Positions 25,578-56,501 of a stretch of 64,000 bases of DNA are shown here, piece by piece. The stretch is from Rhodosorus marinus CCMP1338 (Eukaryota; Plantae; Rhodophyta): contig JAMWBK010000005.1 of assembly GCA_029953675.1 (NCBI GenBank), forward strand, positions 1,426,001 to 1,490,000, written 5' to 3'. How positions within the stretch are numbered: the stretch's first letter is position 1; each line of letters starts with the position of its first letter. The position numbers were made by a program, and so were the translations under genes. The notes under the pieces were generated by a model. It searched no databases. It was not told the origin of the DNA and saw nothing but the letters and a program-made list of their open reading frames with translations.

Positions 25578-25623
25578 CTCCAATACACCACTTTTTCACA
25601 CTCCAATACACCACTTTTTCACA
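25578..25623. repeat. Perfect tandem duplication of a 23-bp unit (ctccaatacaccactttttcaca x2) in a divergent intergenic region
   Basis: Read directly: 25578-25600 and 25601-25623. Confidence 0.9.
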
Positions 25624-25968
25624 TATAAACATATTTTTAGACATGTCTGTCCATAATTAAAATATACGAATAATTATGCATGTATTTTCATGGTATAAAA
25701 GGATAGATGAAATAATTTATACATAAATATTAAATACAGTAGTGTAAAAACAAAACTATTTTGGCCATAAGGTGATGTTGGGGTTTATGTTGGATTTTGA
25801 TTCGTTTGGATAGGATTTGTATTGAAATGGTGGATTTTGGAAGTGTTTTTGATGTTGTTTGGTTTGGATGGAGGGAAATGGTGAAAAAGTGGGCAGACTG
25901 GGCCCGTGTTTGGTGGGTGAGCAGGGAAGTAGACAGCTTGAAGAGATATTCTTTTTGCTGGATCGAAG

Positions 25969-33778: not shown

Positions 33779-36471
33779 CTACTCTCGCAGGTTAATGTAC
33801 GCGTAATAGTCGAGTGTGGCGTTTCTCCTGGCCAGTTCCCCGGCATGAGTAGTGAGCTGTCTACCGCCTCGCCGAATGCTGGGGGTGTCACCTGCTTTTC
33901 AAATGGGAAGTCAGAGCTTAGCTGCAATGGAAGTGAACTCCCACGGTAGACCTTACACTTGGACACGTACTTGGTCGTCCTCCGAGAGTGTACTCAAGCT
34001 CTTGGATAGACGTCATTGTCTTCCTTTCCTGCGTAGTGAAATCCTTCAAGTAGACCTGCTCCGCTCTTTTCCGGTTGCGGCGATCATCGCCGAGAACTTC
34101 GAGGTCTAAACGCGAAAAAGACAAAGCCAAGTACTCGAGAAACGAAGCACAGCTAGTGATCTGGGCGAGCATCCATCGCTTTGCAATGACGCTTTGCAGG
34201 GCCAGCTCCGGAGGCGGGCATAAGAATCCGGTCGTTGGCCTTTCCCCATTGTTCGACTGTCCGACCAGCTCGTATTGACCTTTTCAAGGAAGAATATGTT
34301 GAACAGGGGTAAATCAGTCTCGGCGCTCCCGAGGTATCTGTTCCAGAACCTACCCGACAAGGCTTCAACAGATAGAGCATTGATCGCGGATCGGAGATCT
34401 CCCCTTGAAGCCGACGCGATCGAGCTCAAAAGATCAGGTGATGCATTAAGATTCTCGCGAAAATTGATTCGAGAAAGAATCGCACGTATCTCAGTCTCGT
34501 CGACCTCACTCATGTGAATCCAAATCGACTTGAAATCCAATTTTCTGGCAGTTGAAATGTGATCGTTGCAGGTGACTATTATAGGGCGGGTTCTCGTCTC
34601 GCATAGCATTTGCAGGCTCTGCCAAAAACCCCGCTCATCCTCTGCAAGCTGATCAACCTCCTCGAAAAGGATCAGTACATTCCTTGGTTACATCACAGCA
34701 ACACGTATGAATGAGGGTTGGCGGATCATAGCAACCGCGAGCGAGAAGGCATAAAGCTTGCGCACCTGTTAATCTCGCTTCCAGATCGAATTGCTTCAGT
34801 CGATGTTACCTCACTGACCTCGGCTAGTATGCGTTTGCCCGTTCTTTAAGCATGAGAAGGCAGTCCAGTGAGAAACACTAAGAGCGCAATAATTTCGAGA
34901 GCAGTTTCATGTATCGGGATCCCGGAGGTTCTTACCTACAAATACCAGCGTTTATCTCATGGACAACGAAACCCAGCTGACCAGCGACCGCGTAAACCGA
35001 TGCAGTTTTACCACAGCCGGGAGGTCCTGACAGCACCTGGACAGTAGTCCGACGAGAGGAGTTTGGTTTAGACACGAATCAGTCTCAGTTGAGGTCTCCA
35101 CCAGTTGGTAAGCCCCGTACCAGTGCAGAACATCGGCCTCTTGCTTTGGTTGATGCTTTTCTAGCTTTTGAACCATCTCGGTGCCAAGACTCCAGCCACC
35201 TGAACATTTCAATTCCACATTTTGAGGGGACTTCACTCGAGGTTTTTGGCCTGTACTTCACAAGCAGTTCCTCGCTTGTTGGTACTGAGCGCGGTCGCTT
35301 AGCTGCTCTTTTTCTCGGACCTAACAGCTTAATGTCGGACCCGATTTCTTGCCTGCGTTGCCTGGAGGCGTCGGTCCACATCTGCTCCGCAAGTCGTTGA
35401 AGTTGTGGGTTCCGAGGTCTTGTTCTGTTTCCTTTCGATTCGGCGCCAACGTGAACAGTAGCATTGTTGCATTCCCATGCGTCCCGACCCTCCGGGCAGC
35501 TCTCGTGCCTGTCGTGGCTCTCTGACTCGGAATGACGTCTCGTCTTCCGCTTCAAGAAGAACGGGTGGTAGTCGTCGCAGGACGCAGCAGGCGCGGGGCT
35601 CTTTGAAATCTCCTCAATCAGGATGACTTCCTGAGTTCCGGAGGTCGTTTCATGCGGAGATTCAGAGTTCCCGGCGGTAAACGATTCTTCCTGGACGAAA
35701 CCTTGCTTATTGGTACTCAATAGGACTGCGATTTCCCCATCAAGCTCTTGCTCATCGCCACCTGCAAGGGCCGGGTTCAAAATATCATCCCCTGCATGTC
35801 TCCCAGTCGAACACGGAGGTACTAAAACGTCCTCTGCTCGCTCTGAGTTGTGATTTTCCAAGTCACTCCCCGGGCCCTCTCCAGCGTTTGGGCAATTCAC
35901 CGTTTCTCGTAGCTGCGCATCATCACCCGGAACACAGCTTCCTAGCGGCTCTCGGGTTTCAACCCGTGACTCGGCCGCTTGACAATCTGTGCGCGATTGT
36001 GGCCCGGGCTTTCCTTGTCCGCTTTCCCGAGGTGATCGCTCTACTACACCTCGCACGAGTGCATTGCAAGCGATTTGGTTGCTCAGTTCAGAACCTGCAG
36101 TTGATTTCGAAACTCCTCCCCGACAATGCTGTTGGAGGGTCAACTGTTTCAGATTCGTGGCACGGGGATTCGGCACATCGTGGCTATCCCGAAACCGACG
36201 ATTAGATGCAGCCCCAGATGTTGAAAGCCACGACGTTAGTGCCCGGTGCTGTTGTTGTGCGGTTTCAATCGATGTCTTCGAGGTCCCTTTAGGATTGATC
36301 TTCCCGCCTTTCGTAGATTTTGAGGGTTTCTGGTGCCAGATTCCATCGTGAAATTCCTTGCTCACGGGCTTATCTATAGTCACAAATAAAACTTCGCCCC
36401 ATTAGTGTACATACGAAGAGCGCAGCTATCATTGCAGTTCACTTACCGTCCAATGCTTGAGAGCACGCCAT
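33779..36471 (-). CDS. ELG1: ELG1/ATAD5-like alternative RFC large subunit; 3' end approximate
   Basis: LSGPPGCGKTASVYAVAGQLGFVVHEINA, LILFEEVD...RPIIVTCND, GDLRSAIN. Long disordered N-terminus. Confidence 0.75.
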
Positions 36472-36947: not shown

Positions 36948-36986
36948 ATTTCCCGGGAAATATATGACAGCCTGTCATATATTTCC
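36948..36986. repeat. Perfect 31-bp palindrome (15-bp arms, 1-nt spacer; 36956-36986) overlapping a 14-bp palindrome (36948-36961)
   Basis: ggaaatatatgacag-c-ctgtcatatatttcc and atttcccgggaaat, read directly. Confidence 0.95.
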
Positions 36987-37876: not shown

Positions 37877-38279
37877 GTAATCTGATTCTTAAGAGCTAGG
37901 TATTTGATTAAGCACCCTCTTTGGGGTTACGTTACGGGGAGAACCCTTTGTGTGTTTGTATTTTATCTAGAGAAGGAGCGCACCGGGGACTCCAATTGTG
38001 ATAGGCGCGGAGAAGTATACACTTTTTCATACTATCGTACTTTATTATATTTTATGCTTCTATATCGTATTTTCACCCTTTTTATACTTTCTTATATATT
38101 GTTTAAAACTTTAGATATACATACATAAATAAATATAATAAATATATATTTATATATATTAGGGTTGGGCAAGAGGGTCGGGTTTTTCGTTGTGTACCCC
38201 TCTAAACCCCCATGTTTTCGAGGGTTTAACCATTTGAGGGTCGTAAGCAGCGAAAAGCCCGACCCTCTTGGCACAACCC

Positions 38280-38310
<31 letters not shown>

Positions 38311-38594
38311 TTGTATATTTATATGATATATATAAGCAAGTACTAAGAAGGGATAAAAATAAAAATTCGATATAAGAGTAGAAAATTTAATAATGTACAA
38401 AAGTATGATGAAGCATAAATTCCTCATAGGCTATCAGGAGTCTCTCCCCACCCCCCACACCTTCGGTCCGTCCGCTCCCTCTCTGGAACAAATACACGCA
38501 CACACACACCATAACCTTCCAGCTATCTCGCCCGCAAAAGGTCTCCCCCGAAAACCTAACATAATCTAATACCAAGTTTTAGTAGTCAGATTAT
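37877..38594. repeat. Long imperfect inverted repeat (fold-back), ~720 bp, centred near 38220
   Basis: The left arm aligns to the reverse complement of the right arm throughout: 37877-37910 with 38561-38594, 37925-37985 with 38465-38550, 38020-38100 with 38330-38415, and 38161-38193 with 38247-38280. Confidence 0.9.
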
Positions 38595-39722
38595 GAGACC
38601 AAGGCAACGAAAATTGAACTAAGATAACTTTAGCTGGAATCCTGTAACAGAGGGCCTCCGAATTGACCCTACCAAGGGTTAGTGGCAACCCCCCCACCCC
38701 CCCCGCGACCAGCTCGATTGAAGAATTCATTTTTAGCGTCACCCCTACGTCAACTACAAAAATTGAATATTATAATTTAAAAAAAAGATATTCTGGAGCC
38801 ATCCGTAAATTCAGGAGGATGACGTTTACCTAGTATTCGATGTAAGCTCCCCCAAAACACTAGTTAACTGTCACCTGTTCTTTTGCCTTGTGGGTCTATA
38901 AATCCGCTTTTTTTATTACTTGATTTCATATACGACTAGATGACGTTTAAATACTGAATTTATGTTCTCGTCCAAGCGTCACCCTCCTCTTTTCCTCGTG
39001 AGCGTCGAAAGGGCGGTTAATTGTTCTAAAATATAATATCCTAGTTGCTAATAGAATGATACAAATATTTGTGTTGAACGTATTAGTTTAAGTATCACAT
39101 ATTATTATTTTAATAATATCTTTATTTAGTTTAAAAATAAGATAGATACATCATGACACTAAAATTGTTTTATTGGTTTCGCTGTCTTGGCTAAGCTCCC
39201 AGCTAAGTCAGCAGCAGCTTTTGGGGGTGGTGTGGGGCAAGAGCGAGGCAGGAGTACAGAGGGGAAAGATCGTGCAGAAGGTGAAGTGTCGATGTTACTA
39301 GTTAAGTTTGGCTGGTAGAACTCGGTGGGGGACTTTCGCGACCTTTTTTTTTTGCTTTGTGGTTGGTGTGTTTGTTAAAGTTTGGTTTCGTTGGGCAGAA
39401 GTGTAAGGACTTGCTGGCTTTTGCTGGCGGACAAGATCTCCTGTGCAAGTAGCGGGGTTGAAGCGGGGATTTGTACTGGTTTGCTTGATTTCTCGAACAG
39501 GATTGGACTCATATTTGAGGTCATTTGGTTGGGCGCTTTTTTTCCTATCGGGATAGAGTTGTAAGGGCAAGAGTGGGCTTTCCAGGGGGTCTTGCAGGAT
39601 GTCGTGGTGGAGTTGACACTTCAAGTTTGGCCTAGGGTCTGCTTAGCTCGAGTACGAGTCTCTAGTAGTTTGGAAGCACAAGGTTTTGCTCGTTTGGGGG
39701 GAAGTTTGGCGAGGTGCAGGAT

Positions 39723-41952
39723 ATGGTAGAATGGTGGCGAATTGTTGTTGCTGTCGTATGCTTGTGCTTATCGGGCCTGTTTTCAGGCCTGACGTTGGGG
39801 CTTTTCGCCTTGGATCTAACCGATTTGGATATCCTCCTTGATTCTGGTACTGAGAAGGAGAAAAAGTATGCCAAAAAAATTTATCCGCTTAGGAAGCGCG
39901 GGAATTATTTGCTGTGCACGCTTTTGATTGGAAATACCGCTGTCAACTCGGCGCTGGCTATTGTTACAGCTGAGCTGTTTGGAGGTGAGTACCTCTTTGA
40001 AGTCTACATCAGCCCGTAATGGAATCTGCAATGCTTCCGCTGGATTGTCTAATTTCTGGTTGCTGTTATCCGATGGTGATGTAGGAATCTCGGGTTTCCT
40101 TGCTTCAACATTTCTAATTCTCTACATTGGAGAGATTATCCCACAATCTGTTTGCCATAAATATGGACTAGTTATTGGTTCATACGCAGCTCCGTTGGTG
40201 TACCTGTTTATGCTGCTGACTTTTCCACTGTCCTGGCCAACTGCCAAAGTTCTTGATTGGTTCCTCGGAGGGGAGTCTCCTGTTAGGTTTGTTTTGAAAA
40301 TCCATACTGCGTATGTCTCTTTGCTTCTCTTAAGCTCTTCCTACTGCTCTGTTGTAGATATGATAAGACTCAGCTTCAGTCGCTAGTAACTCTCCATGGG
40401 TCGACTGCAAAAGCAACGCTCTCAGAGGACGAAACACGAATCCTGAATGCTGCTTTGATGTTTGCCCAGAAGACCATAGAACAAATCATGACACCACTAT
40501 CAAAGGTAGATCGACGACAATCGTGATACTGACACTGGCTCTCAACAGCTTAGCTTGACTGTTTGCTGTGATCCATTCCCATTCGATAGGTTTTTATGTT
40601 GGAAGTCCACCAGCACCTCGATTCGAAAAATCTGCTACTGGTGTTCCAATCTGGACATTCTAGAATTCCTGTTTACGAGAAGGATAGGCACAACATTCTC
40701 GGAGTTTTGTTTGCGAAGGATATTCTGCTGATTGACCCCGAAGATAACATCCCAATTTCGACCGTGATGAACTTTTTCAAGCGCGAGCTGAAGTATTCCT
40801 TCAATGACACGCGGTTGGACAAGATGCTCAACGAGTTCGAGACTGGTCGAGGCCACCTGGCTGTTGTACAAAAGGTTATTAACTTTGGACGAGGCGATCC
40901 ATACTACGAGACAATTGGGATTGTCACCCTAGAAGACGTCATTGAGGAACTGATTGGGTCGGAGATCGTCGACGAAACCGACGTGTACGAGAGCAATAGC
41001 TCAACGAAGAAGATGAACAGAAAGCGGTACATAGACTCGGACGTCCTTCGGCTTTTCTCGCATGATTCTTCAACCACTAGCTTGCAGGATAATGAAGTGC
41101 TAGCAGTTTCCAGCTTCCTTTCCACTCACATAGAAGAATTCTCATCTCGAAAGATCCCGGTAAGTTTGCGCCCAACTATTTGGTTTGTGAAGGCGATGGT
41201 CTGACCTTGCTATTCGACGCACGAATTCTATGTAGCCGGAAGTGCTTCGCCAACTTCTCAAAGAGTCGCGTATTGTGGAGCATAAGGAATCACCAGCCGC
41301 CGCAGCTGCAGCTGCCAGTTCTGATATTGATGACGACAAGAACATGCTTGCAGATGGAATTTCGGGTTCGGTGGTTAGCAAGGATGACGATGGACCGGAC
41401 AAGGGGATCGTTGGAACTTCGTCTCTTGAGCTAGGCGCCGAAGAATCTGATGAGCCTCTGCTGGTTTACAAACGAAACGTTCCCGCAATGGTACTAGATC
41501 TGCACCCATATGGGAATATGCACGTTGTCATAGATGCTCAACTCACATTCCCTGACACATCTTTGGCGCTGATTTGTTAGGAGGCTACACTGATCATCAC
41601 TGGTCGTTTAGAAGTATTTGCTGGGTCTGATGGAATTCATTCCGAGGTTGGACCATGGACACTACTCGGTTCGAAGGCACTGGTGAACGAACTCTATCAA
41701 GCGGACTTTACGGCCAGAGTCATTGAGTACCCCTTGCGTATGTTGAAGATTCATCGAAAACAGTACCGAAACGCTATCAACAGGACCAGAGCTGATAGCT
41801 TTGTTGGAAAGTCTTTGTTTACCCCAGCCGACTACCTGAGACCAGGTAGACCTAATTTCGAGGACGATGCGCTCGTTGGGCGTGCTCACCCGTCGTCTCG
41901 AGAGTCAAGTGATATTTACAGCGAGGATGACCGTGACGAGGACATTCCGTAG
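39723..41952 (+). CDS. CNNM: CNNM/DUF21-CBS metal transporter-like protein with C-terminal cNMP-binding-homology domain
   Basis: LSGLFSGLTLGLFALD, NYLLCTLLIGNTAVN, GEIIPQSVC, SGHSRIPVYE, GIVTLEDVIEELIGSEIVDETD. Confidence 0.9.
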
Positions 41953-42144: not shown

Positions 42145-44008
42145 CTAGGCGAGACTATACTTCGGGCCACCACCACCCTCAGGAACGCTCCAATTGATGT
42201 TTTGGCTAGGGTCCTTGATGTCGCAAGCTTTACAATGCAGGCAGTTCTGAGAATTTATCTGCAGCCGCTTTGAGCCGTCCTCCTTCTCGACGTACTCGTA
42301 TACCTTAGCTGGGCAGTATCTACAATGGCAACAACATTGACGACCAGCAGCTTAGATTAGTTTGTGGAAGCATTGGCGTCGAAAATGGAAGATATTCTCA
42401 ACTGGGTTTGGCCGCAGGTTTTCGTCCTTTTTATGCCTACCTCTGCTCCGGGCCGTCGTAAACAGCAAGGTTTAGTGAGTTCATGCGTGCAGCGTCTCCG
42501 ACCTTGAGATGGACTGGCTCATCGTGGTTGTGGTTTGTTCCACTCAATGCGAGGTTCGACAACAGGTCAAAAGTGAGCTTGCCGTCCTTTTTCGGGTACT
42601 CAATTGGTTTGTATTTGCTGGCTGCTCCAGTGCTTTCGTGATCAGCCTCTCCGTGCTTGAGGGTTACACCATGCCATCTACCCTTTGACACATAGGCTTC
42701 AACTCCTGACACGGCGAGCCCGGGCAGCATACCATACTGAAACGCAGGTCGGTAGTTTCGAACGGCGTGCAGCTCGCTGTATACCCAACTCCCTTTTAGT
42801 GCCTCCTCGTATCCTTCTAACGAAGTAGTGCTCTCCTCCATGGCAGACGTGACAGAATCTGCTGCAAGAATGCCGCTTTTCATTGCCGTATGCGTTCCCT
42901 TAATCTTCGGTACATTCAGAAATCCAGCAGCACAGCCAAGCAGAGCCCCGCCGGGAAAGTAGAGCTTGGGAATACTCTGAACACCTCCCTCGTTGAGTGT
43001 CCGAGCTCCGTACTGAATCACCTGCCCTCCCTCGAACGTGCTCCGCACCGTAGGATGCGTCTTCCACCTCTGGAACTCCTCATATGGAGACATGTACGGA
43101 TTTTTGTAGTCGAGGCTCACGACAAAGCCCGTTGCAACGCGGTTCTCGTCCATGTGATATAGGAAAGCCCCGCCGTATGTCCAGTAATCCAAAGGCCACC
43201 CGATAGTGTGCATGATGGTTCCTGCCTTGTGCTTGCTTGGGTCAATTTCCCAGACCTCTTTGATACCTAGTCCATACGTTTGATGCTGAGCATCCTTGCG
43301 AAGATCAAACTTGTCGACCACCTGCTTCGTCAGCGATCCTCTTGCGCCTTCTGCCAGAAGAGTATAACTCCCTTCTATTTCAACGCCGCGTTCGTACGTG
43401 CTCTTATGCGTGCCATCCTTGCCAATTCCGAAGTCCCCCGTGGCAACCCCTCGAACCGTTCCTCGCTCGTCATAAAGTAGCTCGGAACCTGAAAATCCCG
43501 GATATATCTCAACACCAAGCGCTTCGGCCTTGCTCCCTAGCCATCTCGACAGCTGCGACAAGGAGATTACATAGTTGCTGGCATTGTGCATAGGTGGGGG
43601 TACGGGAAGCCGAATCCCAAATCCTTTGAAAAGCCAGTAAAATCTGTCATCCACTCCTCCCTTCAGTTTCACTGGACAGGTCTCGTCGTTCCTCCAGTCG
43701 GGAAGGAGCTCAGAAAGTCCCCGAGGATCGAGAACATTCCCAGATATAATATGAGCCCCGACCTCTGAGCCCTTCTCCAGCACACATACAGAGACGTCCT
43801 GGTCCTTCTTCTGAGCGTTCTGCTTTAGTCTAATCGCTGCACTCAAGCCCGCAGGACCACCACCAACAATAACAACGTCATATTTTCCCATGGACTCCCT
43901 AGCCGGGAGTTCGTTTGCCCCCTCAGGAGCCCCTCCGGATGAAAAACCCCTCCCATTCAACCTCGTCAATCCGCGCAAACCGCGTGAGCAAACCCTCAGC
44001 CCATTCAT
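42145..44008 (-). CDS. ETFDH: Electron transfer flavoprotein-ubiquinone oxidoreductase; 2 exons
   Basis: [71 protein letters not shown]. Mitochondrial-type presequence. Confidence 0.97.
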
Positions 44009-45122
44009 CCCGCCAGCTTTTCCTATCCACTCATCCAGGAAACTTATAGGAGGACAAAAGAATTTCACGGGTTTCCACCAGCCTTAAGAAAAACAAAAAA
44101 AAAACTCAACGAGACGACTATGAACTTACTCAACTAAGAACACGAAGGCACAAACAGCTCAGTTAGAGAGAAACTAACATAGCAAAATGACTACTCATGA
44201 ACCCCTTCTTCCTGAACTGTGGAAACCCTCCACCCTCCCAAAACGGAGGAGGGCTTTTCTGAGAGCGCTTTCCACCACGCCGGTTGGGAAGCGTGAGGTT
44301 ACACGCCCTCTACTTTCGCGACTCAGCAATATCTTAGGAGTTTGGTCCTCTTAATTATCAGGTGATTTGATCTTCTAGGTAGTGTAGGTTGTCACTAGCT
44401 TCATGGCCTCTTTCGTAGCGACCGGGCTGGTCTTGATAGTCTCGTCACGGAGCTGTGGTTTACTAACTAGTTTATACGGCGGGTGCGAGTTCGAGGACAG
44501 GGAAAGGGAAGTCACAAGTTTGCTACTACGACTAACACTTATTGGTACTCTCATGGCTATGAAGTGCCACCCAAGACTTGTCCCTCAGGAGCGTGCGGTT
44601 CATCGCTCATGAGCTTTGCTCCTGACGGTAGGCTCGGAGTCCGCGCGAACAGCCAAGGATATTGTGAATTCATGACCCTTTTTGTGCTCTGACTATGGGA
44701 TCCCTTCGCGCTACAGATTCTCTTGAACCCTTCCCAGTCCGAAACCCGACTCAACTTGCTAGTAGTGGCGCTTGGAGCATCAAGGGACTTTCGGCGCAAT
44801 GAAATCACTGTCATGGGACGCTGAGGGTATGCTCCTGTTCGTTGCTTGCGCTGTATGCTTCCCAGTCTCCAGTTTCTAGGAGCCAATCTGGTATTCAGTA
44901 GAAGCAATGCTCTGGTTAAGGCAAAAGGTCAACACAATGACCCTGGAGTTTATGTCAAGAGTTAGATAGACTGTTCAAATTCTTTCTCACATCAGGTTCG
45001 CTAATCTGTGCCTAGATTTCTGAGCTGAAAGTTGTCCAAACTCCCTTTTAAGTACCGTGACAACGTCGTGGACCGTCTCACAGTGAAGCCTGCCCCACCT
45101 ACCCAGCTCTCTCGTTCTCCGC

Positions 45123-52874: not shown

Positions 52875-53746
52875 TGCAAAACGCGAAGTTGGAATTTTTG
52901 CGGCGCGGAAGAGCGCTTGGCGAAGATTCTTGTAGTGCGCCTTATGTGGTTAGTAGAAATATCATTCGCACGCGTTTTGCCTTGTTTTTTCGACCGATAG
53001 TTTACATTATATTACAGTAGCTCATTGCATGAACTGCAGCCAGCCTCTTTTGGTTTCAATCTCAAAAAGGACTAACGACATCGACGCGTTTTTCCGGGCG
53101 AGGTAGCACAGCGCGCGTCCAAAAGACACGACCCGTGGCTAGCACCAACCAAAATGATGAGCCGTTCAGAGCGTTATTCTTCTAGCATCCCTTAAAGACA
53201 AAGCTTCAAACCGTTTCGCTTAACCACAATGGATTGCGTAGCTGAACACCTTCGCTTCAATGGGTCAAAGCATATATAAAAAACAAAATAATAATATTTC
53301 TCATTAAAATAACTAATCCTCAATGTTTGTACCTTATTAAAAATATATATAATAAATCAAAGAAATAATTATTGCTTTAGGTCTATTAGAAGTATATCCT
53401 CCATATATGTACATTTATTCAATAACTTATAAATGTATTATGTTATAAAATAAAGAATTATTTGATAATCGTAGTTTAGCTTCATTTTATTGGTTCTATA
53501 GATTCCTATGGCAGAAGTGTTTTCTCGTTTGGATGCTATTCTTGAACGGATGGGAAGAGCCAAAAGCTGCGAATAGCTGACGAAAGTGCTTTGGATGGGA
53601 CCAGTTGCTATCTTGGGCTTGTTATGGATGAAGGTGATCGTGCTGAAGGTGAAGAACTGGAGTGAAAAAGCCCTTATAAGCATTTCGTTCAAGTTGCATG
53701 GGAATGAGACCTAAGTATTGTACATAATTGTCCTAAGTTTCGAGCT

Positions 53747-55054: not shown

Positions 55055-56501
55055 CCGGTTCGAACACCCAGGCCCTTGAAAAGATGACTGCTAACCAGGA
55101 AGACATGGTTTTGTACAGATGTTTGGATAATAAACAACGGGAACTGAAATGCTGACAAGCGAAAGCTAGCCTTCACACCCTGCATATACACTCAGGTTGC
55201 TGAGTTGGACGAAATCGGAGTTAAGGGTGGGATTTTGAATTGCGATTCATACTTTTCTCTGGTTGAAGAGACCCAGAGCGGCGCAACTCAAATTTCCAGT
55301 CTTGCTTAAGAGCAAACCAATCCAAAACTAGGAGTCGACTCCAGTTGTTCCTTGTTCCTTGAGCAACGTTAAAGATCAGCGTCATAAGCTTGTCGATGAC
55401 CATTATCATCATAGCTTTTAGCCCGATCGCTCAAAGGTCAAAAGGTGGGTTGAAAGACATCACCTCAAACGGCGTTTTCCATTCCAAGAACTCCTGGGAA
55501 CTATTTCTTGGAATGCTTTAAAGCGATGTCTTACAACTCAACACAGCGGAACTCGATGAGGGCATTCTGACCCAAAGCCACGTTGTTAAGGGTGATCGAC
55601 AAGCACGACAAGGCTGGACATAAGGTTGGCGCAAGGAGCAATCAAAGGTGAATTTTTCCACGCGGGACAAGAAAACGGGAAGGGGACCACGCGACCGCGG
55701 CGAGAAAATGTAGATATCACGTACCAAAACTTCAAAAAAGGTTAAGCTAATCTAGCTGCCAAAAGTCCTATACAAACGAAGCCGTGTACTACCACTCACA
55801 ATCGTCGTCCAACCCTAAACCCAAAACGAGCCCCATTAAAAAAGCTCCAAAAAGTCTTAAAATTCTTAACTTATAAACCAATGAAGTGTCCGTATAAGGA
55901 TATATTCATTGAATATCTATCAATATCTATCAATATATCCATTCTATCCAATAAAATATTGACTAGTAACAAGTCAATCATTTTAACGTGAGATGTTTTT
56001 TTATTGTTTTTGGAAGGGTAAAAAAATGGACCGTGAAAAAATCTGCGAATGCTGTTTTGTCGCTTTTTCTGCCGATGAAGAAGTGGACTTCTTGGAGAAA
56101 GAGGTGATGATGGTGGGGGTGGCTTCAAGAGACGATTTGGAGTAACCGGAAACCAATTTTAAGGGTCTTTTGGGGGGTTTGATTTTGTTCATTTATAGAC
56201 TCTTGATCGTTCAGAGGTTGGTTTGTTTGTGGCTTTGTTTTGTTGACTGTCTTGCGGCCGGGGGAAGGGCGGGGTTTGGTGGTTTCTGGTGGTTCGTTGT
56301 TTGTTTTGCCCTTCTTGTGTCGAAGGGTGAGTTGGATTTCCCGTTTGCTTGTTTTCTTTTTTTTTGGCGGTTTTGAAAGTGGATCGAGAGTTTGGACTGA
56401 TCTTCGACTTTTCTTTTGCTTTTGTTTTAAATTGGTTGGCATGTTGGTAGGTTCTGTTGTTTTTTTTGGTGTGCGTACGGTGATTACATGGTGGGATAAG
56501 A

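Follow-up and report, generated by a model that had tools for sequence, protein, structure and literature searches.

The human palindromes PATRR11, PATRR17 and PATRR22 are near-perfect and stay AT-rich right through the centre. Inverted repeats also occur as small-RNA loci, as in the hpRNAs of Drosophila, the IR-siRNA loci of plants and the young MIRNA genes that derive from inverted duplication, and a further group, the fold-back (FB) elements and long-TIR MITEs, is recognized by two long arms that form most of the element and by discrete ends. The palindrome described here has both such arms and such ends. It lies in the genome of Rhodosorus marinus CCMP1338 (Stylonematophyceae, Rhodophyta; assembly GCA_029953675.1, contig JAMWBK010000005.1), within a stretch of 64,000 nucleotides that we call the window and whose coordinates are used throughout; the contig coordinate is the window coordinate plus 1,426,000, and the palindrome occupies 1,463,878–1,464,593 of JAMWBK010000005.1. 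An initial annotation of this DNA had offered two readings, a hairpin RNA under RNA-level selection or an old fold-back, non-autonomous element. We consider the palindrome to be probably a non-functional relic of one inverted-repeat-forming event.

A 716-bp palindrome without coding capacity

Gapped alignment of the left half with the reverse complement of the right half, carried from 37877/38594 inward to the core, pairs the arms 37878–38206 and 38234–38593 from end to end, in agreement with the ~720-bp fold-back palindrome with two reverse-complement arms that had been described. Its length is 716 bp, or 718 bp if the additional G/T pair 37877/38594 is counted, and the earlier coordinates hold to within one base. 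The local alignment score is 140 compared with 22.1 ± 3.2 for dinucleotide-preserving shuffles (z = 37), and each segment is significant alone, with z values of 7.8 for the outer part, 11.8 for the AT-rich middle and 16.5 for the core. In a tiled self-complementarity scan of the 64-kb window the palindrome scored 136, the runner-up 29 and the 99th percentile 26. A repeat search of the same 64 kb found no further long inverted repeat, and blastn of the palindrome against the window returned the self-match and no second copy. The symmetry ends sharply on both sides (flank-vs-flank scores of 18 and 22, with shuffle means of 17.5 and 22.7); neither the 300-bp flanks nor the whole of the remaining intergenic flanks align better than shuffles. 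The features of the locus are as follows.

33779–36471, minus strand: left neighbour, AAA+ / RFC1-lid (ELG1-like) gene, 735 aa, NCBI gene model, pointing away from the palindrome
37878–38593, no strand: whole imperfect palindrome, 716 bp, defined by the end-to-end gapped arm alignment
37878–37885, no strand: left terminal inverted repeat TAATCTGA, perfect over 8 bp, with ~77% terminal identity onward to ~37912
37886–38010, no strand: left outer arm segment, of genome-like composition (37877–38010: 46% GC)
38011–38159, no strand: left AT-rich arm segment, 16.8% GC, ending in an ATAT-type microsatellite at 38115–38159
38092–38427, minus strand: spurious low-complexity ORF, 111 aa, with an ATG start, spanning the centre; not a gene
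38160–38281, no strand: GC-rich core, 52% GC, TAGGGTTG...CAACCCTA, a 122-nt hairpin
38170–38193, plus strand: main 24-bp helix, 5' side, pairing with 38247–38270, with T opposite G at 38183, 38190 and 38193
38198–38240, plus strand: asymmetric apical region, containing CTAAACCC and GGGTTTAA
38247–38270, plus strand: main 24-bp helix, 3' side
38282–38419, no strand: right AT-rich arm segment, 16.7% GC, starting with a degenerate (TA)27 at 38280–38334 (TRF)
38420–38585, no strand: right outer arm segment (38420–38594: 50% GC), carrying C-rich and CA-rich insertions that the left arm lacks
38586–38593, no strand: right terminal inverted repeat TCAGATTA, perfect over 8 bp
39723–41952, plus strand: right neighbour, CNNM/CBS metal-transporter gene, 602 aa, NCBI gene model, pointing away from the palindrome

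With a GC content of 36% in a 49% GC genome, the palindrome is built of three nested parts. The left outer segment differs from its partner mainly by large indels, which bears out the mismatches and indels that had been noted in the outer parts of the arms. Inward of these lie the AT/TA microsatellites seen previously, the ATAT-type tract on the left and the degenerate (TA)27 on the right, and between them the core. The make-up of the core stem is exactly as first reported: one true mismatch (G/G, 38169/38271), one bulge and three T-opposite-G positions (38183/38257, 38190/38250 and 38193/38247). Both of the nested inner helices were also located, at 38198–38202/38236–38240 and 38203–38209/38222–38228; together they flank a 7-nt internal bulge and close a loop of ~12 nt (38210–38221).

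The palindrome sits inside a 3251-bp gap that separates the divergent RFC1/ELG1-like (minus strand) and CNNM (plus strand) genes; for the former, RFC1-like AAA+ lid domains are the only domain basis for the ELG1-like label. The divergent arrangement noted earlier is thereby confirmed, and the gap, previously called the largest gene-free interval, is the widest among the 21.9 kb for which annotation was seen. An ETF-QO gene (protein KAJ8904897.1) is also nearby in the window. The palindrome is found where the window is most AT-rich at the kilobase scale (37.6% GC), at a point 46% along the 3.19-Mb contig, in a genome (31.19 Mb, 49.03% GC, assembled from Nanopore and Illumina data; PMC10250338) with a mean of one gene per 3.7 kb.

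Several other features of the region were observed. Between the RFC1/ELG1-like and CNNM genes, ~485 bp upstream of the former's annotated start, positions 36956–36986 form a perfect 15+1+15-bp palindrome (GGAAATATATGACAG-C-CTGTCATATATTTCC), which has no sequence relation to the 716-bp palindrome and could be a putative dimeric factor-binding site. Just upstream of the CNNM start, the stretch 39200–39700 has a strongly positive GC skew (+0.37 to +0.50) and a negative AT skew, and there are poly-C tracts at 38445–38460 and 38688–38703; both the skewed stretch and the tracts probably reflect 5'-UTR or promoter composition. AT islands (≤22% GC, >140 bp) occur at 25610–25770, 39005–39189 and 53248–53505 in a window of 48.5% GC, one of them only ~420 bp beyond the right end of the palindrome. 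The islands have no real sequence similarity to the AT-rich arms and may be common to the intergenic DNA of R. marinus in general. At the next nearest CNNM locus, that of Galdieria sulphuraria, we found no shared synteny and no comparable gap. There (BPMW01000002.1) CNNM is called as two adjoining genes (115 and 348 aa) that have a SET/zf-MYND gene and SecA as their neighbours, and because of these different flanks the R. marinus order RFC1-like, CNNM, ETF-QO is not conserved in G. sulphuraria.

The palindrome has no coding capacity. The initial annotation had stated that no ORF is present, which is literally incorrect given the 111-aa ATG ORF on the minus strand, and yet holds in substance, as this ORF has no Pfam match, no gene call on record and no homologue among 5.8 billion proteins. 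Negatives for R. marinus from this protein search are weak: when a 202-aa exon of the CNNM gene was used as the query, its own annotated 602-aa protein was absent from the results and the best match was from Galdieria (58%), and since the locus's own protein was not returned, such negatives are unreliable. Exact look-ups of the palindrome ORFs among transcript-derived gene calls were empty, a result that is uninformative as to transcription. The mirrored 74-aa ORF of the left arm was considered as a gene fragment and rejected, its sole match being a spurious one to a tandem-repeat/satellite translation.

At the nucleotide level, plasmid and phage collections gave no match to the palindrome and a viral collection gave none (0) to a 19-mer of the core. 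Among JGI metagenome contigs the core 19-mer was found at 15 loci, 10 of them from one project. We rejected these as relatives, the common sequence being only 19–25 nt within an unrelated bacterial repeat and hence a chance match. The repeat is itself a conserved element of ~95 nt, present on at least 10 metagenome contigs (Ga0326733/Ga0326734/Ga0316208) as TTGGGCGTGCCCCAAGAGGGTCGGGCTTTTCG...stem-loop...CACTGCAATCCCTCACGC; it has no Rfam match at gathering scores, its source is probably Flavobacteria, with a Flavo-1 RNA on one contig, and it is unrelated to the palindrome apart from the chance identity. A MMETSP transcript labelled Rhodosorus marinus (JGI 3300017118, Ga0186320_104643) is 89.5% identical in nucleotide sequence to CCMP1338, as measured across the ETF-QO gene (window 42289–44192), and strains named R. 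marinus thus appear to have diverged at about species level (~10% in this coding region). The 19-mer scan was accordingly discarded as a test of expression, an exact 19-mer match not being expected at 89.5% identity.

Origin of the palindrome

The sharp ends, non-coding sequence, ~20% diverged arms and AT-rich interior make the old fold-back, non-autonomous element the better of the two readings originally offered. On sequence evidence we would tentatively regard the palindrome as the dead relic of a non-autonomous element of fold-back/MITE type, an assignment that we place somewhat short of probable. The analysis shows that the palindrome exists, where it ends, that it is unique in the window, and that it has neither coding capacity nor a strand bias; its transposon origin and its neutrality are inferred. 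The element would have landed between two divergent promoters, possibly at a TA, and a single event would have given two arms of ~330–360 bp around a short asymmetric centre. The arms would then have gained ~20% substitutions and many indels in a roughly uniform neutral decay, with microsatellite slippage prominent in the 17%-GC middle segments. The observed divergence between the arms is a p-distance of 0.20 (K2P 0.23). The strong hairpin formed by either strand, as RNA or as DNA, would be a by-product of the palindromic origin, and not a selected RNA structure.

The termini were inspected for a target-site duplication (TSD). No direct repeats of 3–10 bp were found at offsets of 0–3 beside the termini, and the flanks GTTTGCCCCG and GAGACCAAGG are unrelated. 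The earlier statement that no TSD is present therefore stands for lengths of 3–10 bp; it needs qualification in that a flanking TA/TA exists if the element is taken as 37880–38591, although this pair is ambiguous as a TSD because it is self-complementary and indistinguishable from the repeat itself. The lack of a 3–10-bp duplication also excludes a MULE-type TSD of 9–11 bp, and the published RepeatMasker table for this genome contains 0 MuDR-IS905 elements (PMC10250338 source data), such that the description of the palindrome as MULE-like had to be abandoned. Tandem sub-repeats of the arms, a strict FB character, were sought with TRF, which returned only the AT/TA microsatellite and a few two-copy repeats. 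None of the large ORFs of the window has a Pfam transposable-element domain.

The repeat background of the genome bears on the fold-back reading in both directions. Repeats make up 15% of the R. marinus genome, with CRE LINEs at 9%, LTR elements at 1.3% and classified DNA transposons at 0.03%; the last comprise one hAT-Tag1 family and zero Tc1/mariner, MuDR, PIF or piggyBac elements (PMC10250338). A further 4.03% is unclassified interspersed repeat, in 6757 pieces belonging to more than 200 small families that are typically 5–25% diverged (PMC10250338), and given this fraction a short, diverged, unclassified element is unremarkable in R. marinus. Against a transposon relic stand the single copy in 64 kb, the lack of an unambiguous TSD, the near absence of classified DNA transposons and the lack of structured FB sub-repeats in the arms.

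The same anatomy is explained equally well by a local inverted duplication that never involved a mobile element, and the present data do not separate the two origins well. In this scenario a replication template switch or hairpin-mediated repair at a cruciform-prone (TA)n would have copied ~330 bp of intergenic DNA in inverted orientation, giving a PATRR-like palindrome that has since diverged enough to be stable. The objections just listed to a transposon, namely the single copy in 64 kb, the missing unambiguous TSD and a genome nearly devoid of classified DNA transposons, all speak for such a duplication, as do the AT microsatellites that adjoin the centre of symmetry and the genome-like GC content of the outer arms (46–50%). 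The AT-rich islands of other intergenic regions are of comparable composition (≤22% GC), which implies that the raw material is native. However, where a PATRR is AT-rich at its centre, this palindrome has a 122-bp GC-rich hairpin whose loop is asymmetric; its symmetry breaks off with equal sharpness on both sides, each end bearing the perfect 8-bp terminal repeat, and this genome alone does not reveal a single-copy parental sequence. We therefore hold a local duplication to be possible, if on balance doubtful. The fold-back/MITE relic is favoured over it because of the discrete, equal ends and because short unclassified repeats abound in the genome.

The core hairpin

The initial annotation had singled out the core as much better conserved than the rest of the palindrome. 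In successive bins along the arms the substitution-level identity is 0.77, 0.77, 0.82, 0.70, 0.84 and 0.81, compared with 0.87 in the core stem. In absolute terms, 34/39 sites (87%) are identical in the core stem and 210/268 (78%) in the rest, a difference that is not significant (Fisher p = 0.29), and the claim of superior conservation could not be sustained. The outer parts look worse mainly as a result of indels, and the cleaner look of the GC-rich centre comes only from its not being microsatellite-like. As the similarity at the centre does not significantly exceed that elsewhere, there is no need to suppose that it was homogenised, as had been proposed.

A second claim was that the core is maintained by wobble pairing, with differences between the arms that are G-U-compatible on the plus strand and would be A-C mismatches on the minus strand. 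Across the whole palindrome there is no strand bias in the mismatches: 15 are G-U-compatible on the plus strand and 11 on the minus strand (p = 0.56), and outside the core the counts are 12 and 11. Within the core alone the count is 3 on the plus strand and 0 on the minus strand (two-sided p = 0.25), and the wobble argument consequently lacks statistical support. Folding of both strands gave a divided result. As RNA, the 131-nt core (38155–38285) has a minimum free energy of −78.0 kcal/mol on the plus strand (z = −11.7) and −68.2 kcal/mol on the minus strand (z = −8.4), which favours the plus strand, whereas at the full length of 718 nt the minus strand folds slightly better (−274.0 vs −268.5 kcal/mol). 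As DNA, the same 131-nt core reaches −42.8 kcal/mol. A stable stem-loop does not discriminate between readings, since any palindrome yields a large negative z on both strands. No Rfam family was matched at its gathering score; the best match was mir-4650 with 33.4 bits vs a threshold of 80.7, and all the matches were of the generic miRNA-hairpin type, far under their gathering scores.

These data bear directly on the reading of the palindrome as a long hairpin RNA gene, a source of hpRNA or siRNA or a young miRNA precursor on the plus strand with Dicer-like processing, in which selection tolerating G-U wobbles would keep the core paired. The greater stability of the core on the plus strand and the three of three core-stem transition differences that are G-U on that strand fit RNA selection, and to this extent argue against neutrality. 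Also counted in its favour are the placement of DCL1/AGO1 loss in the Cyanidiophyceae only (PMC9812998) and the report of small RNAs in the unicellular red alga Porphyridium (PMC12026948). The strand signal nevertheless comes from three sites and is not significant, it vanishes outside the core, and it is opposed by the full-length fold; the core is not significantly better conserved, the large z values are those expected of any palindrome, the Rfam matches fall far below threshold, and the 64-kb window contains no target or parent gene that resembles the arms. We thus consider a hairpin RNA gene unlikely, and the proposal of RNA-level selection is not borne out by the p values, the full-length fold or the Rfam search. 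The more specific prediction from the sequence, a plus-strand long-hairpin RNA locus whose core would be kept paired by G-U-tolerant selection and diced into small RNAs, appears rather improbable.

The composition of the core raises the alternative of a composite structure, in which an older, AT-rich palindrome would have received a younger 122-bp palindromic MITE (38160–38281) in the (TA)n tract at its centre. TA repeats adjoin the core on either side, the change in composition is sharp (52% vs 17% GC in the surroundings), and the core termini TAGGG...CCCTA fit the YARNG pattern of hAT-type elements, hAT-Tag1 being the sole classified DNA-transposon family in the genome. On the other hand, the core arms (87%) are not significantly above the outer arms (78%), so there is no sign that the core is younger, an 8-bp TSD would be unreadable inside the microsatellite, and the core has no second copy in the window, with no viral matches to its 19-mer and only chance metagenome matches of ≤25 nt. 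A composite origin seems quite improbable.

The core does contain the telomere-like words that had been pointed out, each as a single unit. Three of the 12 matches to the plant-type telomere 8-mer in the window fall inside the core, where they reduce to two independent single units that pair with their own complements. For non-cyanidiophyte red algae no telomere repeat type is established (PMC3622300), and the words in the core are probably coincidental. We considered CTAAACCC as a telomerase-RNA template and rejected it, as the word is paired with its own complement in the palindrome and comprises only about one repeat unit. Elsewhere in the window, at 55811–55822, there is an interstitial plant-type telomere-like 12-mer (AACCCTAAACCC, within CCAACCCTAAACCC) that resembles a telo-box; this site and the left edge of the core have in common the 10-mer CCAACCCTAA (the reverse complement of TTAGGGTTGG, 38159–38168).

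The palindrome might act in cis as a DNA structure, for instance as a cruciform that takes up negative supercoiling between divergent promoters, as an origin of replication or as a centromere of the small, AT-rich Cyanidioschyzon type. In favour of such a role are its position between divergent genes, within the widest gene-free gap seen and the kilobase of the window with the highest AT content, its place 46% along the 3.19-Mb contig and the stability of its DNA hairpin (−42.8 kcal/mol). Islands equally AT-rich are, however, present at 25.6, 39.0 and 53.3 kb, a gap of 3.25 kb is not extreme at one gene per 3.7 kb, arms of 78% identity extrude poorly as a cruciform, and data on centromeres or origins of R. 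marinus are unmentioned in PMC10250338; such a role is very unlikely. That the palindrome arose as an artefact in the Nanopore-based assembly, or came from an organelle (NUPT/NUMT), is scarcely credible: the assembly does combine ONT data with Illumina polishing, NUMTs are reported as abundant in the R. marinus genome and the 17%-GC segments are organelle-like, but chimeric fold-back reads yield near-perfect palindromes and not ~20% diverged arms with many indels, and a NUMT is made unlikely by the mitochondrial minicircles of R. marinus, which are described as GC-enriched, non-coding regions included, whereas the arms are AT-rich.

Significance and comparison with known systems

As a decayed fold-back relic, the palindrome would be one more unclassified, degenerate fold-back repeat in a genome with 4% unclassified short repeats, and its import would be modest. 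The lesson that it carries is that a striking 'wobble-maintained' hairpin can rest on three sites. More would follow if a family of such elements existed genome-wide, which would constitute a new type of DNA transposon in a genome almost free of them. Likewise, a true hairpin-RNA locus would be the first described in the Stylonematophyceae, an early-diverging mesophilic class of red algae, and if its stem were processed to small RNAs, this would bear on the reach of RNAi-type pathways in early-diverging red algae. The strains labelled R. marinus are useful comparators because of their ~10% divergence, which would make possible a clean comparison of presence/absence and covariation.

Among the known systems, non-autonomous MULEs share with the palindrome terminal inverted repeats of a few hundred base pairs, but the palindrome has no 9–11-bp TSD and its host has no MuDR elements. 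The inverted-repeat small-RNA loci resemble it in that a transcript of it would form a long imperfect hairpin of comparable size, with a core of ~120 nt that has pre-miRNA-like dimensions; the palindrome differs from them in that its arms do not resemble any target or parent gene of the window, there is no signal of strand-specific conservation and no Rfam family is matched. The likeness to FB-type elements and long-TIR MITEs lies in the pair of long inverted arms, which make up almost the whole element and leave a short non-palindromic stretch between them, the lack of coding capacity, the AT-rich interior, the discrete ends and the intergenic position. In contrast to those elements, the palindrome is single-copy in the 64 kb, has neither an unambiguous TSD nor tandem sub-repeats, and has no identifiable autonomous partner in a genome almost without classified DNA transposons. 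With the PATRRs it shares a length of several hundred base pairs, very AT-rich arms (16.7–16.8% GC in the middle segments) with GC-richer distal ends, and the character of non-coding, cruciform-prone DNA that is not obviously a transposon. Unlike the PATRRs, however, it has a centre of 52% GC that forms a hairpin around an asymmetric spacer, and because the arms are only ~78% identical the R. marinus palindrome should be much more stable than its human counterparts.
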